In this document: positions 1-32,633 of the stretch, in pieces | Layout of the letters: every line of letters starts with the position of its first letter | Position numbering within the stretch: the stretch's first letter is position 1 | Source: Macrostomum lignano | Taxonomy: Eukaryota | Reading direction: 5' to 3' | DNA length: 64,000 nucleotides | Assembly (NCBI GenBank): GCA_002269645.1 | Contig: NIVC01001700.1 | Coordinates: 262,394 to 326,393 of the forward strand | Made by a program: the position numbers and the translations under genes | The notes under the pieces: model-generated | Told to the model about the DNA's origin: nothing | Database searches by the model: none | The model's input: the letters and a program-made list of their open reading frames with translations, nothing else

Positions 1-3000
1 ATGTCAGTCATGAGCGAGTAGATCTTCGAGTAGGTGCTGCCCGGTGCTGAGGTCTGGGAAGAGTTCGATTAGGATTTGGGGATTCGAATTTTTTTATAAG
101 AAGTATCTTGACAATGGTAGGAATCATAGAAATGTTAGATGCCTTTTAAGGGTGGATTATTTTTTTAGCATATTAGATGTTTAGATTGGTAGAAAAATGG
201 TAATTTAGTAAAATGATGGGTTGGTAAAACTGTAGCTTAGTAGATTGTCGGCGGATTGGTAGAATGGTAGATGATTACAATGGCAAACTGGTATATCAGA
301 GATTGTTATATATTGGCATATTGGTACAAGGGTAGATTGGAAGATTATTAGAATCGCATTGGTAGAGTCGTAGATTGGTAGAGTGGTAGATACGTGTAGG
401 TGGAATGGTAGATTGGTAGAATCGTAGTTAGGCAGAATGGTAGATTGTTAGAATGATAGATTGTTAGATGTGTAGAATAGTGCATTGATTGATGGCTAGA
501 TTGGTATATTTGTAGAATCGTAGTTAGTAGAATGGTAGATTGCTAGATTGGCAGAATGGTAGATTAAGTGGATTGTTAGATTTGCAGATTGGTAGAATCT
601 TAGATAGGCAGAATTGTAGATTAGTAGAATGGTAGATTGATAAACTAGTAAGATTGAGAGACTGGTAGATACATGCGGTATAACTGTCGATGTTAGAATG
701 GTAGATTAGTAGAATGGTAGATTGATAAACTAGAAGATTGATATACTGGTAGATACATGCGGTATATTTGTTGATTTTAGAATGGTAGATTGGCTAGATT
801 GGTAGACTATTGCAATCTAGTGCCCGCTTCGGGGCGCCCAATAAGCAAGGAGCAAAAATTATTCATGCAAATCAATTAAAACAACACATTTTCTTAAGAA
901 CTAATACCTTCTACAGTTTTATAAATCACCTTATTCCAGTAAAATTGTCATGGACAAAGATTCTTGCTTCTAAAAGTAACAAAAGTACGCAACAAAATAA
1001 AGCCCTCACAAAGATAACAGGCATTCCCCCTAAATCGAAAGTATCCCCCAGACCGCAAGCATCCCCCCATCCCCCGAGATAGCAAGCATCCCCCAGACAG
1101 CAAGCATCCCCCCATCCCCCCAGATAGCAAGCATCCCCCAGATAGCAAGCATCCCCCAGACAGCAAGCATCCCTCATATAACAAGCATCCCTCATATAAC
1201 AAGCCCCTCAGATAGCAAGCATACCCAGATAGCAAGCATCCCCAGATAGCAAGCATCCCTCAGATAGCAAGCATCCCTCAGATAACAAGCCCCTCAGATA
1301 GCAAGCATCCCCAGATAACAAGCATCCCTCAGATAGCAAGCATTCCTCAGATAACAAGCCCCTCAGATAGCAAGCATCCCCAGATAACAAGCATCCCTCA
1401 GATAGCAAGCATTCCTCAGATAACAAGCCCCTCAGATAGCAAGCATCCCTCAGATAACAAGCCCCTCAGATAGCAAGCATCCCCAGATAACAAGCACCCC
1501 TCAGATAGCAAGCATTCCTCAGATAACAAGCCCCTCAGGTAGCAAGCATCCCCCAGACAGCAAGCATTCGGCAACAGCAAGCAAGTAGATTAGTAGAATG
1601 GCAGGCGGTAGAGGCGGTTTTCTAGAACTGCAGATTGGTAAGTAAGTTGGACAGAACTGTAAATTATTGCTGCTGAGCAAGCATGGCACTTTGCTGCCGC
1701 CAACCTGGAAAAGCGTCTGCACGTTGGTGCCGGACTTCACCACTGGCCGGATGACTGTCTGGCCGGCCAGCTCCTCCAGATTCTTCACCGTCGCAGCCGG
1801 GATGTTCAGCGTGAGGTAGCCGATCATGTCCGCGGTGTAGTAGGCCATCATCACCACCGTGACGATCCACCAGAAGCCCAGGACGAAACGGGAGGAGGAG
1901 GCGACCGGGTAGAAGTCCTGGCCTGTGTGGGTGAGGATGGGGTGGGTGAGTAAGGATTGGGGTGGGTGAGTAAGGATTGGGGTGGGTGAGTAAGGATTGG
2001 GGTGGGTGAGTAAGGATTGGGGTGGGTGAGTGAGGATTGGGGTGGGTGAGTAAGGATTGGGGTGGGTGAGTAAGGAGTGGGGTGGGTGAGTAAGGATTGG
2101 GGTGGGTGAGTGAGGATTGGGGTGGGTGAGTAAGGATTGGGGTGGGTGAGTAAGGATTGGGGTGGGTGAGTGAGGATTTGAGTGGGTGGATGAGTGAGGA
2201 GTGGGGTGGGTGAGTGAGTAGTGGGGTATGTGAGTGAGGATTTGGGTATGAGTGAAAATTGGGGTGGATGAGTGAGGATATGTGAGAAAGTGAGTGAGAA
2301 TTCGTGTTGGTGAGTGAACGGATTGGTGGATTGGAGCTGCAGCCATAGCTCGCATGGATTAATAAGCAGATTCGCACCTTGCTGCAGCAGCGAGCCAACG
2401 ATAGACCAAAAATTCTCCCTTATCGACACCTCGTCGGAGATCTTCTCCGACAGATTCATGTTCCAGGCGGAGAATGGCGACAGGTAGGAGAACAGGAACA
2501 TACACACGGCGGCGGTGAACACAGAGCCAAGGATGGCCAGCCAGCTGTTCAGGGAGAACGGCGACAGCACTCGGAACATAGGGTTCTCCTGGCCTGGGGT
2601 CGGTTTCAGGGACGTTTTGGATTGAAGTTCAGAGGTCCAACAAATCACGAGAGCTCAAGGTACCAAAAAAGAGATTTCAGGGGTCCCAGTAAAAAGGTGT
2701 CAGAATTCCTAAAAATCAGGGGTCAGAGGTCTAAATAAGAGGTGTCAGGGCCTTCAAAAGAGGTGTCAGGGACCGCAGTAAGCGAGGTGTCAGGGACCGC
2801 CGCAATAAGCGAGGTGTCAGGAACCGCAATAAGCGGGGTGTCAGGGACCGCAGTAAGCGAGGTGTCAGGAACCGCAATAAGCGAAGTGTCAGGGACCTCA
2901 ATGAGAGAGGTGTCAGGGACCGCAATGAGAGAGGTGTCAGGGACCGCAATGAGAGAGGTGTCAGGGACCGCAATGAGAGAGGTGTCAGGGACCGCAATGA

Positions 3001-30400: not shown

Positions 30401-32633
30401 TTAATCAACAGGCCAGGACTTCTTTCCCATGCTTGTCCCCCAAAGGGGGCTCAAGTGCTAGTCTGATGTACCAAACCCATTTCAATTAATCAACAGGCCA
30501 GGACTTCTTTCCCATGCTTGTCCCCCAAAGGGGGCTCAAGTGCTAGTCTGATGTACCAAACCCATTTCAATTAATCAACAGGCCAGGACTTCTTTCCCAT
30601 GCTTGTCCCCCAAAGGGGGCTCAAGTGCTAGTCTGATGTACCAAACCCATTTCAATTAATCAACAGGCCAGGACTTCTTTCCCATGCTTGTCCCCAAAGG
30701 GGCTCAAGTGCTAGTCTGATGTACCAAACCCATTTCAATTAATCAACAGGCCAGGACTTCTTTCCCGTGGCTGCATCGGCCCGCATCGTGCTGGGACTCT
30801 GGTGGTGCACCGTGGTGGTCATCATGGCGCTGTACACAGCCGACATGATCGGCTACCTGACGCTGAACCTGCCGGCCACCAGCGTTGAAAGCTTGGAGCA
30901 GCTAGCCGCCCAGTCCGTTATCGAACCGGCTGTCAAGTCTGGCGCCAACGCCTACACGCTGTTTGAGGTTGGCTGGCTTTCGTCTTGATATACTAAACAA
31001 ATCAGCAAATTTGCGTATAAAGTACTTTCAGTAGAAAATTTTAAATACAAGTATTTTAGTGTATTTTAGGTTTTTGGTTGGCTTTTTTAGCATAATAACT
31101 CTACCGAACCGCGGCTAACACAGCGTTTAAAAATGTTCGCATGACCGCTGAGGGACACCCTGGCGCAACGCCTTCGCCAATATTGTCCCACAAAGCAAAC
31201 GAAAACCAGGGGTCGTGGCGCTAGGGTCAGACAAAATGTACATTACGGCTGCACCAATGGAAAGTTAGAGAAACTTAGGGCTCAAGAAGTAGAGTCGAGA
31301 AAGAGTATCTCAACATCAAAGTCACCCAGAGAAATCCTCAATCCGAGCAGAAGTCGCCGGCAGGAAGCACCTACAACAACATCTTCAAGCTCATGGGCAA
31401 CATGCCCAAGTTCACCGAGACTGAGCAGGGCGTCAATCTCGTCAAGGGAGCAAACTTCTCTGACCGACAATTTGCTTTTATTGGCGACCGAACTCAGCTG
31501 AGCTACTCGGCCCTCACCAACTGCGACTTGCTGCTGCTCAGCGACATCTTCAATGTAGCCACCTTCGGCTGGCCGATGCAGAAGGATGCGCCCTACAAAG
31601 AGGACATCAATAGAGAGTGGGTTTATGTTTTGTCACCCCTTTACAGCCCTCAAGCATGCCTGTTCCAAGAGTCACAGCGTCATAGTTGCTCTGCTGATCC
31701 ACCTCACTTCATGTCGCTTCTAACGTCATTGCTGATCCACCTCACTTCATGTCGCTTCTAACGTCACTGCTGATCCACCTCACTTCATGTCGCTTCTTAC
31801 GTCACTGCTGATCCACCTCACTTCATGTCGCTTCTTACGTCACTGCTGATCCACCTCACTTCATGTCGCTTCTTACGTCATTGCTGATCCACCTCACTTC
31901 ATGTCGCTTCTTACGTCACTGCTGCCCCACCTTACTTCATGTCGCTTCTAACGTCACTGCTGCCCCACCTCACTTCATGTCGCTTCTTACGTCATTGCTG
32001 ATCCACCTCACTTCATGTCGCTTCTTACGTCACTGCTGATCCACCTCACTTCATGTCGCTTCTTACGTCATTGCTGATCCACCTCACTTCATGTCGCTTC
32101 TTACGTCACTGCTGATCCACCTCACTTCATGTCGCTTCTTACGTCACTGCTGATCCACTTCACTTCATGTCGCTTCTTACGTCACTGCTGATCCACCTCA
32201 CTTCATGTCGCTTCTTACGTCACTGCTGATCCACCTCACTTCATGTCACTTCTTACGTCAGGACGTGCTGCTCCACTTCAATTTATGTCACTTCTTACGT
32301 CACTGCTCGAACCTCACTTCAATCCGTCGTCGCACCCCTCGCAGACTGCAGCGCCTGGTCGACAGCGGCTTAATGGCCCGTTGTATTAAGAAATGGTGGA
32401 GCGCCGAGAACATCTGCGCTATAGAAAGCGACCTGTCTGACGAGAAGCCAGTCGACCTGCTGCAGGCCGGCGGCACTTTCATCATTCTGGCCGGCTTCTT
32501 CGCCGCTGGCGCGGTGGTGCTGCTGGCCGAGTGCCTGCTGCACCAGATCACCCTCTGCTGCCGGAGATGCAGAACGGGCAACATTGGGAGGGCCGGCCGT
32601 CAGGGCTACAAAGTCAGTGGATCGCCTCAGTAG
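18420..32633 (+). CDS. Ionotropic receptor / iGluR-family subunit, IR25a-like (gene 2), 789 aa
   Basis: Exons: 18420-18504, 22945-23058, 24464-24921, 25403-25813, 26092-26201, 26972-27062, 28854-28965, 29204-29419 (GC donor), 30750-30967, 31351-31616, 32345-32633. Total 2370 nt, in frame. Motifs: PFTMTAIRQTVIDFS, GTFLQQG, LYTADMIGYLT, FAFIGDRTQLSYSALTNCDL (compare IR25a FAFLGDATDIRY..LTNCDL), KKWW, M4 GGTFIILAGFFAAGAVVLLAE. AATAAA at 32647. Confidence 0.92.
18685..22910. repeat. 4.2-kb 45-mer minisatellite (TGAAGTGTCCATTCTGGGCTGTCACTGTCTCCACTGTAGTTGTCA)
   Basis: About 94 copies filling gene 2 intron 1. Confidence 0.99.
23105..24435. repeat. 8-mer array (GACAGTTT/GACAGTCT)
   Basis: Fills gene 2 intron 2. 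Confidence 0.98.
26295..26890. repeat. 81-mer array
   Basis: About 7 copies in gene 2 intron 5. Confidence 0.97.
28275..28705. repeat. 22-mer array (GCAGTGAACTTCTGTAGGTCAG)
   Basis: About 19 copies in gene 2 intron 6. Confidence 0.95.
29470..29875. repeat. (AATCT)n degenerate microsatellite
   Basis: Gene 2 intron 8. Confidence 0.9.
30176..30766 (+). repeat. 85-mer array spanning a 3' splice site and exon start
   Basis: Seven copies of catttcaattaatcaacag|(G/A)CCAGGACTTCTTTCCC; the last copy overlaps the real exon at 30750. Confidence 0.97.
31690..32310. repeat. 38-mer array (TGCTGATCCACCTCACTTCATGTCGCTTCTTACGTCAC)
   Basis: About 15 copies in gene 2 intron 10. Confidence 0.96.

Follow-up and report, generated by a model that had tools for sequence, protein, structure and literature searches.

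Paired glutamate receptor genes of Macrostomum lignano carry a rewritten M3 gate motif within a flatworm clade

A 64,000-nucleotide stretch of the Macrostomum lignano genome, hereafter the window (contig NIVC01001700.1 of assembly GCA_002269645.1, matched at 100% identity over the 25,169 nt compared), contains two paralogous ionotropic glutamate receptor (iGluR) genes in which SYTANLAAF, the gate motif of the third membrane segment (M3), reads YTADMIGY from its second position on. SYTANLAAF is the longest segment identical across iGluR subtypes, and single changes within it give rise to the Lurcher phenotype as well as to human disorders of GRIN, GRIA and GRIK. The two genes are arranged head to head with their start codons 3.25 kb apart (15169–18420) and are, as judged from sequence, full-length receptors of the AKDF (AMPA/kainate/delta/phi, non-NMDA) group in a lineage-specific clade. 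Taken together, the evidence laid out below makes it probable that they are an old, divergent pair of tetramer-type channel subunits that belong to a flatworm clade and possess a re-engineered M3 gate. Both proteins are already public database entries, albeit uncharacterized, and nothing has been published on the proteins or on the motif; a literature search for Mlig020788 and for flatworm iGluRs returned nothing relevant.

Results

The M3 exon of gene 1 (1705–1922, minus strand) translates to (G)QDFYPVASSSRFVLGFWWIVTVVMMAYYTADMIGYLTLNIPAATVK..., in its longer form (G)QDFYPVASSSRFVLGFWWIVTVVMMAYYTADMIGYLTLNIPAATVKNLEELAGQTVIRPVVKSGTNVQTLFQ, and that of gene 2 (30750–30967, plus strand) to (G)QDFFPVAASARIVLGLWWCTVVVIMALYTADMIGYLTLNLPATSVE..., in its longer form (G)QDFFPVAASARIVLGLWWCTVVVIMALYTADMIGYLTLNLPATSVESLEQLAAQSVIEPAVKSGANAYTLFE; both exons are flanked by an AG acceptor and a GT donor. 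In HMMER alignments, the YTADMIGYLT segment shared by the two proteins falls column for column on SYTANLAAFLT of GluK5 and GluK2, yielding the substitutions N5→D, L6→M, A7→I, A8→G (the Lurcher position) and F9→Y in both genes. At position 1, Ser is replaced by Tyr in gene 1 and by Leu in gene 2, leaving three of the nine SYTANLAAF identities (Y2, T3, A4) in each. Thr3 and Thr11, which are reported to occlude the pore, are retained in both genes together with the Ala4 hinge. In the linker between M3 and S2, the Glu-Arg charges and the upper-gate Met are replaced by LNLP or LNIP (M629→Pro). Both pore loops read LQQGQDF(Y/F)P, with Gln at the Q/R site and Asp at +4, and both pre-M1 segments read MFRVLSPF, which places an Arg where GluA2 possesses S516. 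The rewritten gate, the Gln/+4 Asp pore and the residue mapping (N to D, A7 to I, Lurcher Ala to Gly) had been proposed in an earlier sequence-only reading of this DNA, and exon positions, translations and alignment columns agree with all three. The pore had also been called AMPA-like; the QQG..D signature is indeed retained, but it is generically non-NMDA, common to AMPA and kainate receptors alike, rather than specific to AMPA receptors.

Profile searches and structure prediction corroborate the family assignment. The gene 2 core matches PF10613 (Lig_chan-Glu_bd) with 97.9 bits (cut-off 30) and PF00060 (Lig_chan) with 87.6 bits (cut-off 30.8); gene 1 scores 92.9 and 87.8 bits, respectively, both above the cut-offs. 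The best solved relatives are GluK5 (E 7e-60) and GluK2 (~2e-56), followed by the AMPA receptors GluA1–4 (~1e-52), and the best 60 among the PDB matches listed are all kainate or AMPA receptors. The HMMER alignment to GluK2 and GluK5 spans S1, pre-M1, M1, M2, M3, S2 and M4. In an AlphaFold2 (AF2) model of gene 1, the ligand-binding domain (LBD) and the transmembrane domain (TMD) have predicted local distance difference test (pLDDT) values mostly above 90, with helices at 477–500, 520–531, 543–572 and 731–767; the best Foldseek matches of this model are full-length GluA2, GluK2 and GluD2 chains. Structure modeling, which the sequence-only reading had put forward as a check, thus confirmed the LBD/TMD fold and added little on the gate.

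The best matches outside Macrostomum are spiralian proteins (from Owenia, Pecten, Haliotis, Lineus, Tubulanus and others) that carry the NCBI names ‘delta-1-like’ or ‘kainate-like’. We built neighbor-joining (NJ) trees from simple distances with 100 bootstraps and a GluN1-like outgroup, and repeated them without the M3 motif and pore-loop columns to guard against circularity. Genes 1 and 2 pair at 100% bootstrap, and at 81–84% (84% without the motif and pore columns) they fall into a flatworm clade with six more M. lignano paralogs, Cichlidogyrus (a monogenean) and Spirometra (a cestode). This clade is nested in a spiralian clade of molluscs, an annelid and nemerteans (72% bootstrap), and the combined flatworm/spiralian group stands apart from the GluA/GluK group and from the ionotropic receptor (IR) co-receptors IR25a and IR8a. 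The phylogenetic check against IR25a, IR8a and iGluRs therefore resolves the window genes as a separate AKDF-type clade that is not IR-like. One lophotrochozoan Phi clade has been reported (PMC12226733), and the spiralian expansion seen here may be this ‘lophotrochozoan phi’ clade.

Three other identities were considered and set aside. Membership in the kainate class (GluK1–5) was rejected as the genes group with flatworm and spiralian sequences instead, a result of NJ trees in which deep nodes are weak. The IR25a and IR8a representatives cluster elsewhere, possess another pore loop and keep YTANLAAF or FTANLAAF. The identity of a divergent odorant-type IR is at odds with an N-terminal region of full length, with the retained Arg (FTMTAIR) and Asp (IGD/ISD), and with an αF motif altered only at its third position (T→N).

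The rarity of the motif was gauged in a census of 146 representatives (50% identity clusters) of the closest relatives, collected by an exhaustive HMMER search of 1.84 billion proteins. The canonical residues that the window genes retain, Y2, T3 and A4, are present in 139, 135 and 132 representatives, respectively. At position 5, the canonical Asn is found in 119, Asp, as in the window genes, in 11, and Glu in 2. Met in place of Leu at position 6 occurs in six representatives, while Ile in place of Ala at position 7 and Tyr in place of Phe at position 9 each occur in eight. At the Lurcher position, 142 representatives have the canonical Ala, four have Ser and none has Gly. Gly8 and the full YTADMIGY string are confined, among the 146 representatives, to this gene pair and its assembly copies, with the qualification that orthologues from other Macrostomum species collapsed into the same 50% clusters would be invisible. 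A profile of both M3 exons returned no YTAD[ML]IGY matches in a word-indexed protein search, a search type that had missed the near-identical P0008 and P0009 with another query. Because the Lurcher Ala is so conserved, fully so even in placozoan receptors according to a later survey (PMC12226733), Gly8 is the most notable residue in the window genes.

The acidic residue at position 5 is more widely distributed. Nearly every member of the flatworm clade has Asp or Glu there: the acidic residue is present in M. lignano paralogs (Y[TN]GDLTAHL), in Cichlidogyrus (YQADMTAFL, YQADMTAIL) and Spirometra (YQAELVAFL), in three nemertean proteins (YTADLVAFL, YTSDLIAYL, YTADLAAYL) and in two molluscan ones. 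Judged from these sequences, it is an old trait of the flatworm clade and not new in this gene pair, and it is perhaps common to the flatworm clade and nemerteans. The lineage-specific channel class that had been proposed consequently holds in part: the flatworm clade is recovered at 84% bootstrap without the M3 and pore columns, but N5→D also occurs outside the pair, to which only Gly8 and the full string are private. The largest metazoan iGluR phylogeny (Ramos-Vicente et al. 2018) kept only sequences with at least four of the nine SYTANLAAF identities (PMC6307864), and the window genes, with three of nine, fail this filter, which is a practical screen and not a biological definition. No flatworm is mentioned in the main text of that paper, which uses none of the terms Platyhelminth, Schmidtea and Macrostomum (PMC6307864).

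The two genes are otherwise diverged paralogs, as the sequence-only reading held, with 48% identity overall, 63% across the LBD and TMD, and 30% across the N-terminal ~350 residues. Over 425 aligned LBD and TMD codons, synonymous divergence (dS) is 1.14 and nonsynonymous divergence (dN) is 0.30, with their ratio ω at ~0.26; restricted to the M3 exon, the estimates are 1.24 for dS and 0.22 for dN. M1, M3 and M4 are under purifying selection. The 12-codon motif YTADMIGYLTLN differs between the two genes by three synonymous changes (ACC/ACA, GCG/GCC, CTC/CTG) and by no nonsynonymous one. Sharing of the motif reflects constraint because no nonsynonymous change has accumulated despite dS above 1; on the codon evidence, its identity in the two genes is due to purifying selection on an inherited state and not to convergence, in agreement with the selection that had been proposed from the identity alone. 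Recent gene conversion as the source of the shared motif was considered and rejected, given three synonymous differences in 12 codons and the exon-wide dS of 1.24.

Each gene encodes ~350 residues before S1, and these are strongly diverged. This region had no Pfam match, and BLASTP detected no resemblance between it and the ANF_receptor region of the paralog P0164. In the AF2 model of gene 1, it is predicted at low pLDDT with an alternating strand/helix pattern; Foldseek alignments to full-length GluA2 and GluK2 extend over ~850 columns at low TM-score, and two 74-aa cluster-mates are named ANF_receptor or Peripla_BP_6 in UniProt. In the clamshell LBD, the Arg that contacts the α-carboxylate is kept (FTMTAIR), with an aromatic Trp at the Y450 position. 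The αF motif is GTN in gene 1 and GAN in gene 2, in which the first-position Gly is kept and the third position is changed from Thr to Asn. The partner of the α-amino group is acidic, Asp in both genes; delta and NMDA subunits also carry Asp at this site. The first αF position is Gly in every glutamate-selective receptor aligned in a published comparison, in which Asp at the α-amino partner site occurs in glycine-, alanine- and some glutamate-selective receptors (PMC13648236). Since the Arg, the first αF Gly and the acidic partner are all kept, the agonist is likely an amino acid, with glutamate-like ligands favored, although sequence does not allow its prediction with confidence.

Two functional alternatives bear on these domains. 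The proteins could be non-conducting or accessory subunits, be it GluD-like ligand sensors, adhesion or signaling scaffolds, or obligate modulatory subunits of heteromers. We judge this improbable: the LQQGQDF(Y/F)P loop, with its Gln and +4 Asp, is kept in the paralogs and in the flatworm clade as a DFYP signature, which is hard to explain without ion permeation, and M1, M3 and M4 remain under purifying selection, even if the automatic NCBI name ‘delta-1-like’ of many clade relatives, the Asp instead of Glu as α-amino partner and the strong divergence of the N-terminal domain would all suit such a role. The second alternative is chemosensory use, in which the expansion would detect environmental amino acids or small molecules, as arthropod IRs do, and the gate would tune tonic sensory currents. 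The lineage-specific expansion itself, with several M. lignano paralogs (P0023, P0033, P0037, P0074, P0164), the Thr-to-Asn change in αF and the diverged N-terminal domains are compatible with this use. However, divergent IRs usually lack a full-length N-terminal domain, the ligand-binding Arg and the acidic partner, all of which are kept here, and the genes do not group with IR25a or IR8a; chemosensory use is thus doubtful.

The integrity of gene 2 hinges on its intron 8, which separates the M2 and M3 exons and opens with a GC donor (AAG/gcgagt, 29420–29425); the gene 1 counterpart is AAG/gtgcga. The other nine gene 2 introns are canonical GT–AG, and all 11 exons are open. An intact gene 2 pore loop requires the use of this GC–AG intron. 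The only public model over the M2–M3 junction, A0A1I8GLE9 (P0008), uses a weak GT donor (TGT/gttttagg) 21 nt downstream (window 29420–29442), with the result that the pore loop gains the residues EFGNFLC; past residue 370, the model is fused to the antisense of downstream G-protein-coupled receptor (GPCR) and oxidoreductase genes (40948–46813), and this antisense fusion renders it unreliable. The 3′ end of the same intron is occupied by a minisatellite whose 85-bp unit includes the acceptor site and extends 17 nt into the M3 exon; an intron–exon boundary has thus been tandemly amplified. Five exact decoy acceptors result, at 30319, 30404, 30489, 30574 and 30659, each of which would lead to an in-frame stop after QDFFPMLVPQRGLKC.

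Gene 2 has no GenBank annotation in any of the three assembly copies of the locus. Two lines of evidence could suggest that it is a decaying or poorly expressed duplicate, leaving only gene 1 at work: i) the GC donor at 29420 and the five decoys could cripple M2–M3 splicing, and ii) the 3′ exons are without a gene call in all three copies, with the sole public model being the chimera that adds seven residues to the pore loop. We regard decay of this copy as unlikely. All 11 exons are open with nine other introns in GT–AG form, the GC donor is otherwise consensus (AAG/GCGAGT), and the long-term ω is ~0.26. When the other two assembly copies were compared from the last 23 nt of the gene 2 M3 exon onward, exons 10 and 11 differed at 2 of 555 nt (99.6% identity), as against 92–97% identity in the sequence directly downstream, where divergence between copies is 2.8% and 8%. 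The missing annotation is weak evidence, as the GenBank annotation pipeline dropped transcripts that overlapped repeat annotations or had fewer than 0.5 reads per kilobase per million (RPKM < 0.5; PMC5730564).

A model for gating can be framed against known structures. In a glutamate-activated GluA2 structure, M3 unwinds at two hinges, the ‘S hinge’ at S615 and the ‘Lurcher hinge’ at A622; the pore gate is formed by T3, T11 and M15, and the GluA2 pore is occluded at T617 and T625 (PMC12074995). In the window genes, the equivalent of S615 is Tyr or Leu and that of A622 is Gly. The Ser1 side chain is reported to face away from the pore (PMC5430913). Asp5 is positioned one helix turn above Ser1 (i, i + 4), and Tyr9 one turn further. 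Because it shares the helix face of Ser1, Asp5 is probably not pore-lining; it most likely resides at the collar of M3, pre-M1 and M4 or at an M3–M3 interface, outside the permeation path. The suggestion that N5→D brings a new charge to the bundle crossing is therefore not supported. In one mutational study, GluN1-N650I, GluN1-A653G and GluN2B-N649S/T increase glutamate potency more than 10-fold (PMC10973091), and in GluA2 the S615A/C/Y changes, as well as S516 to Arg or Lys, slow kinetics and weaken desensitization (PMC5430913). By analogy with these receptors, altered gating of the window receptors is a reasonable inference.

In the proposed mechanism, channel opening would still proceed by LBD closure pulling on M3, with the hinges and the M3 face that points to the collar re-engineered. 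The flexible Gly at the Lurcher hinge, together with the altered position 5, would lower the energy of opening, and the outcome could be high agonist sensitivity, slow deactivation, and weak desensitization or some constitutive activity. Ile7 at the gate and the pre-M1 Arg at the GluA2 S516 position may partly offset this open bias. By analogy with AMPA and kainate receptors, Gln at the Q/R site and Asp at +4 would furnish a cation channel with polyamine sensitivity. In a bolder version, the gates of the flatworm clade follow a different hinge logic, with a conserved acidic residue on the collar face of M3, and the window pair, which adds Gly at the Lurcher hinge and lacks the Ser hinge, are natural, selected ‘Lurcher-like’ receptors that display tonic or constitutive activity or extreme agonist sensitivity and might form a heteromer of genes 1 and 2. 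This version is speculative and in our view unlikely.

Several observations weigh against channels with a re-engineered gate. GluN2B-A652G apparently barely changes glutamate potency (1.4 µM; PMC10973091), and A8→G is hence not always activating. Substitutions studied one at a time in mammalian receptors may not have additive effects in a sequence context shaped by hundreds of millions of years of co-evolution, and net gating could be ordinary. Pre-M1 Arg or Lys accompanies an acidic position 5 in ~8 of 14 lineages, versus ~23% of Asn5 sequences, in counts that are phylogenetically non-independent. In the NJ trees, deep nodes are poorly supported. The low pLDDT and the Pfam silence of the gene 1 N-terminal domain, and the GC–AG intron, premature-stop decoy acceptors and absence from annotation in three copies of gene 2, belong on the same side. 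Separately, the pre-M1 Arg/Lys was considered as a salt-bridge partner for Asp5; being enriched but unspecific, it is retained as no more than a weak lead.

If net gating is indeed ordinary, the M3 changes could be the neutral or compensated end-point of relaxed constraint, with gating, leak and ion selection still kainate-like. The spiralian clade is variable at position 5 (N, S, T, R, H, D, E) and also at positions 1, 7 and 9, and lower motif conservation was seen by Ramos-Vicente et al. in Lambda and some Phi receptors (PMC6307864); Thr3, Ala4, Thr11, the Q/R-site Gln and the +4 Asp are all retained, and the near-normal potency of GluN2B-A652G points the same way. Yet Ala8 is held by 142 of 146 relatives, the variable spiralian clade included, with Gly never seen, and Macrostomorpha, Monogenea and Cestoda have all maintained an acidic position 5. 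The motif has zero nonsynonymous differences between paralogs with dS above 1, which argues that the new state is itself constrained, and almost all tested changes at positions 1, 5 and 8 affect the gating of mammalian receptors. We consider such compensated drift a possibility to be taken seriously, if a tentative one, and favor a re-engineered gate.

Gene models and neighboring genes

Feature coordinates are collected in Table 1. The GenBank model of gene 1 is RNA-seq-derived (PMC5730564). The window covers ten gene 1 coding exons in full and ~53 nt at the start of exon 11; what is left of exon 11, and exon 12, which together encode the rest of S2 and M4, lie to its left and were read in locus L001. 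The signal-peptide exon of gene 2 is MSRHRAGLLLLGLHLLLPGLSCSQELRI/G, and its end, SQELRI/G, mirrors GEELRIG of gene 1. Gene 2 is partially covered by the UniProt fragments A0A1I8GLE9 (P0008) and P0002. From S1 onwards, intron positions are the same in both genes. Nearly every intron of genes 1 and 2 carries its own minisatellite; gene 2 intron 1 consists mostly of a 45-bp array of 94 copies, and a (TAGA)n array is found in gene 1 intron 1.

The whole locus is present three times in the assembly, in near-identical form (NIVC01000995.1, NIVC01001700.1 and NIVC01002432.1; loci L002, L003 and L004), which fits the redundancy already known for the DV1 line (PMC5730564). The g1, g2 and g3 protein entries of gene 1 form one 90%-identity cluster with identical pre-M1, M3 and M4 segments, and the gene 2 M4 exon has two residue differences (C/W, E/A) in the other two copies. 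Left of the window (locus L001, 29473–34196), the neighbors of the 3′ end of gene 1 are a gene for ribosomal protein L32e and one with a SARAF domain. Downstream of gene 2 are a rhodopsin-type GPCR, two tandem GFO/IDH/MocA-type oxidoreductase genes, the second of which has ~75–80% protein identity to the first over the stretches compared, and exons of a MutS-family gene.

Table 1. Receptor genes, repeat arrays and neighboring genes in the window
Feature	Position	Strand	Description
Gene 1	1–15169	-	BOX15_Mlig020788g1, PAA64923.1, 787 aa; start codon at 15169; 3′ end beyond the left edge of the window
Gene 1 coding exons (approximate), 5′ set	15095–15169, 10591–10731, 9035–9286, 6711–6875, 5128–5571, 4382–4489	-	
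Gene 1 coding exons (approximate), remainder	3490–3579, 3294–3405, 2378–2593, 1705–1922, 1–~53	-	
Gene 1 exon 8	3294–3405	-	S1 core (GPFTMTAIRQTVIDFSEAFM); ligand-binding Arg kept
Gene 1 exon 9	2378–2593	-	pre-M1 MFRVLSPF, M1, M2 pore helix to LLQQ/G; canonical GT donor
Gene 1 exon 10	1705–1922	-	pore-loop end QDFYP, M3 YYTADMIGYLT, start of S2; 100% identical to PAA64923.1 residues 536–607
Gene 2	18420–32633	+	rebuilt in this analysis; 789 aa, 11 coding exons; outside GenBank annotation
Gene 2 coding exons 1–6	18420–18504, 22945–23058, 24464–24921, 25403–25813, 26092–26201, 26972–27062	+	
Gene 2 coding exons 7–11	28854–28965, 29204–29419, 30750–30967, 31351–31616, 32345–32633	+	
Gene 2 exon 8	29204–29419	+	pre-M1 MFRVLSPF, M1, M2 pore helix to FLQQ/G; then GC donor
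Gene 2 exon 9	30750–30967	+	QDFFP, M3 LYTADMIGYLT, start of S2
Gene 2 exon 10	31351–31616	+	S2 lobe with FAFIGDRTQLSY; Asp at the GluA2 E705 position
Gene 2 exon 11	32345–32633	+	end of S2 (KKWW...C), M4 (GGTFIILAGFFAAGAVVLLAECLL), short C-terminal tail, stop codon
Minisatellite, gene 2 intron 8	30176–30766	+	85-bp unit, 7 copies, 98% matches
(TAGA)n array, gene 1 intron 1	12869–15084		2.2 kb
45-bp array, gene 2 intron 1	18679–22913		94 copies, 4.2 kb
Rhodopsin-type GPCR	40945–42174	-	single exon, 409 aa, Pfam 7tm_1, DRF and NPILY; GenBank-annotated, identical in three contigs
GFO/IDH/MocA-type oxidoreductases	~44500–48060, ~51000–52040	-	GenBank products of 320 and 337 aa
MutS-family gene exons	60399–63416	+	MutS_III (E 4e-18) at 62144–62494; weak MutS_II match at 60399–61010

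Discussion

The gene pair offers a natural experiment on which features of the iGluR gate are required and which are tradable against changes in pre-M1, the M3–S2 linker and M4. Were the Lurcher-like version true, the most conserved iGluR segment would prove rebuildable without lethality; were gating normal, the value of the pair would shrink to the cataloguing of a divergent iGluR clade in spiralians. A sampling blind spot is also exposed: with flatworms unsampled in published metazoan iGluR phylogenies and a filter of at least four motif identities in place in at least one of them, the clade went unnoticed. M. lignano is tractable by transgenesis, and genes 1 and 2 are consequently open to in vivo study.

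Relative to GluK2, GluK5 and GluA1–4, the window proteins are alignable end to end across the LBD and TMD, at 30–37% identity (E ~1e-60 to 1e-50) and with the same topology. They share with these receptors the Gln at the Q/R site, the acidic +4 residue, the ligand-binding Arg, Thr3, Ala4, Thr11, the KWW...C signature and M4. They differ in carrying YTADMIGY in place of SYTANLAAF, a linker without Glu-Arg-Met, Arg at the position of GluA2 S516, αF motifs GTN/GAN in place of GST/GAT, Asp in place of Glu as α-amino partner, and an N-terminal domain that is unrecognizable by sequence.

The best non-flatworm matches are spiralian AKDF-type proteins (Owenia CAH1794110.1, Pecten XP_033737179.1 and Haliotis XP_067672970.1; E 3e-90 to 4e-82, 37–40% identity), which likewise possess a linker without Glu-Arg and a variable position 5, whereas their motif is mostly YTANLAAF-like, with Ala8 in all. 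Flatworm and nemertean kin (M. lignano paralogs such as A0A1I8HJW1, Cichlidogyrus KAL3310748.1, Spirometra VZI22347.1, Lineus XP_064635760.1 and XP_064635837.1, and Tubulanus XP_074655756.1) have an acidic position 5 (YTGDLTAHL and others), a DFYP-type pore and, in many, a pre-M1 Arg or Lys; Gly8 and YTADMIGY are present in none of them, and all are uncharacterized. IR25a and IR8a (P0032, P0062, P0133, P0116, P0132) belong to the same superfamily and also have an N-terminal domain, but their pore reads TPQGGGE and they are more distant.

A further comparison is with GluD2 Lurcher (A8T) and the human GRIN, GRIA and GRIK variants of M3, which affect the same motif positions (1, 5, 7, 8 and 9); GluN1-A653G and GluN2B-A652G are the very A8→G substitution of the window genes. 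Those variants are single and mostly pathogenic changes in a canonical background, whereas the window genes carry a fixed, multi-site rewrite of the gate under purifying selection.

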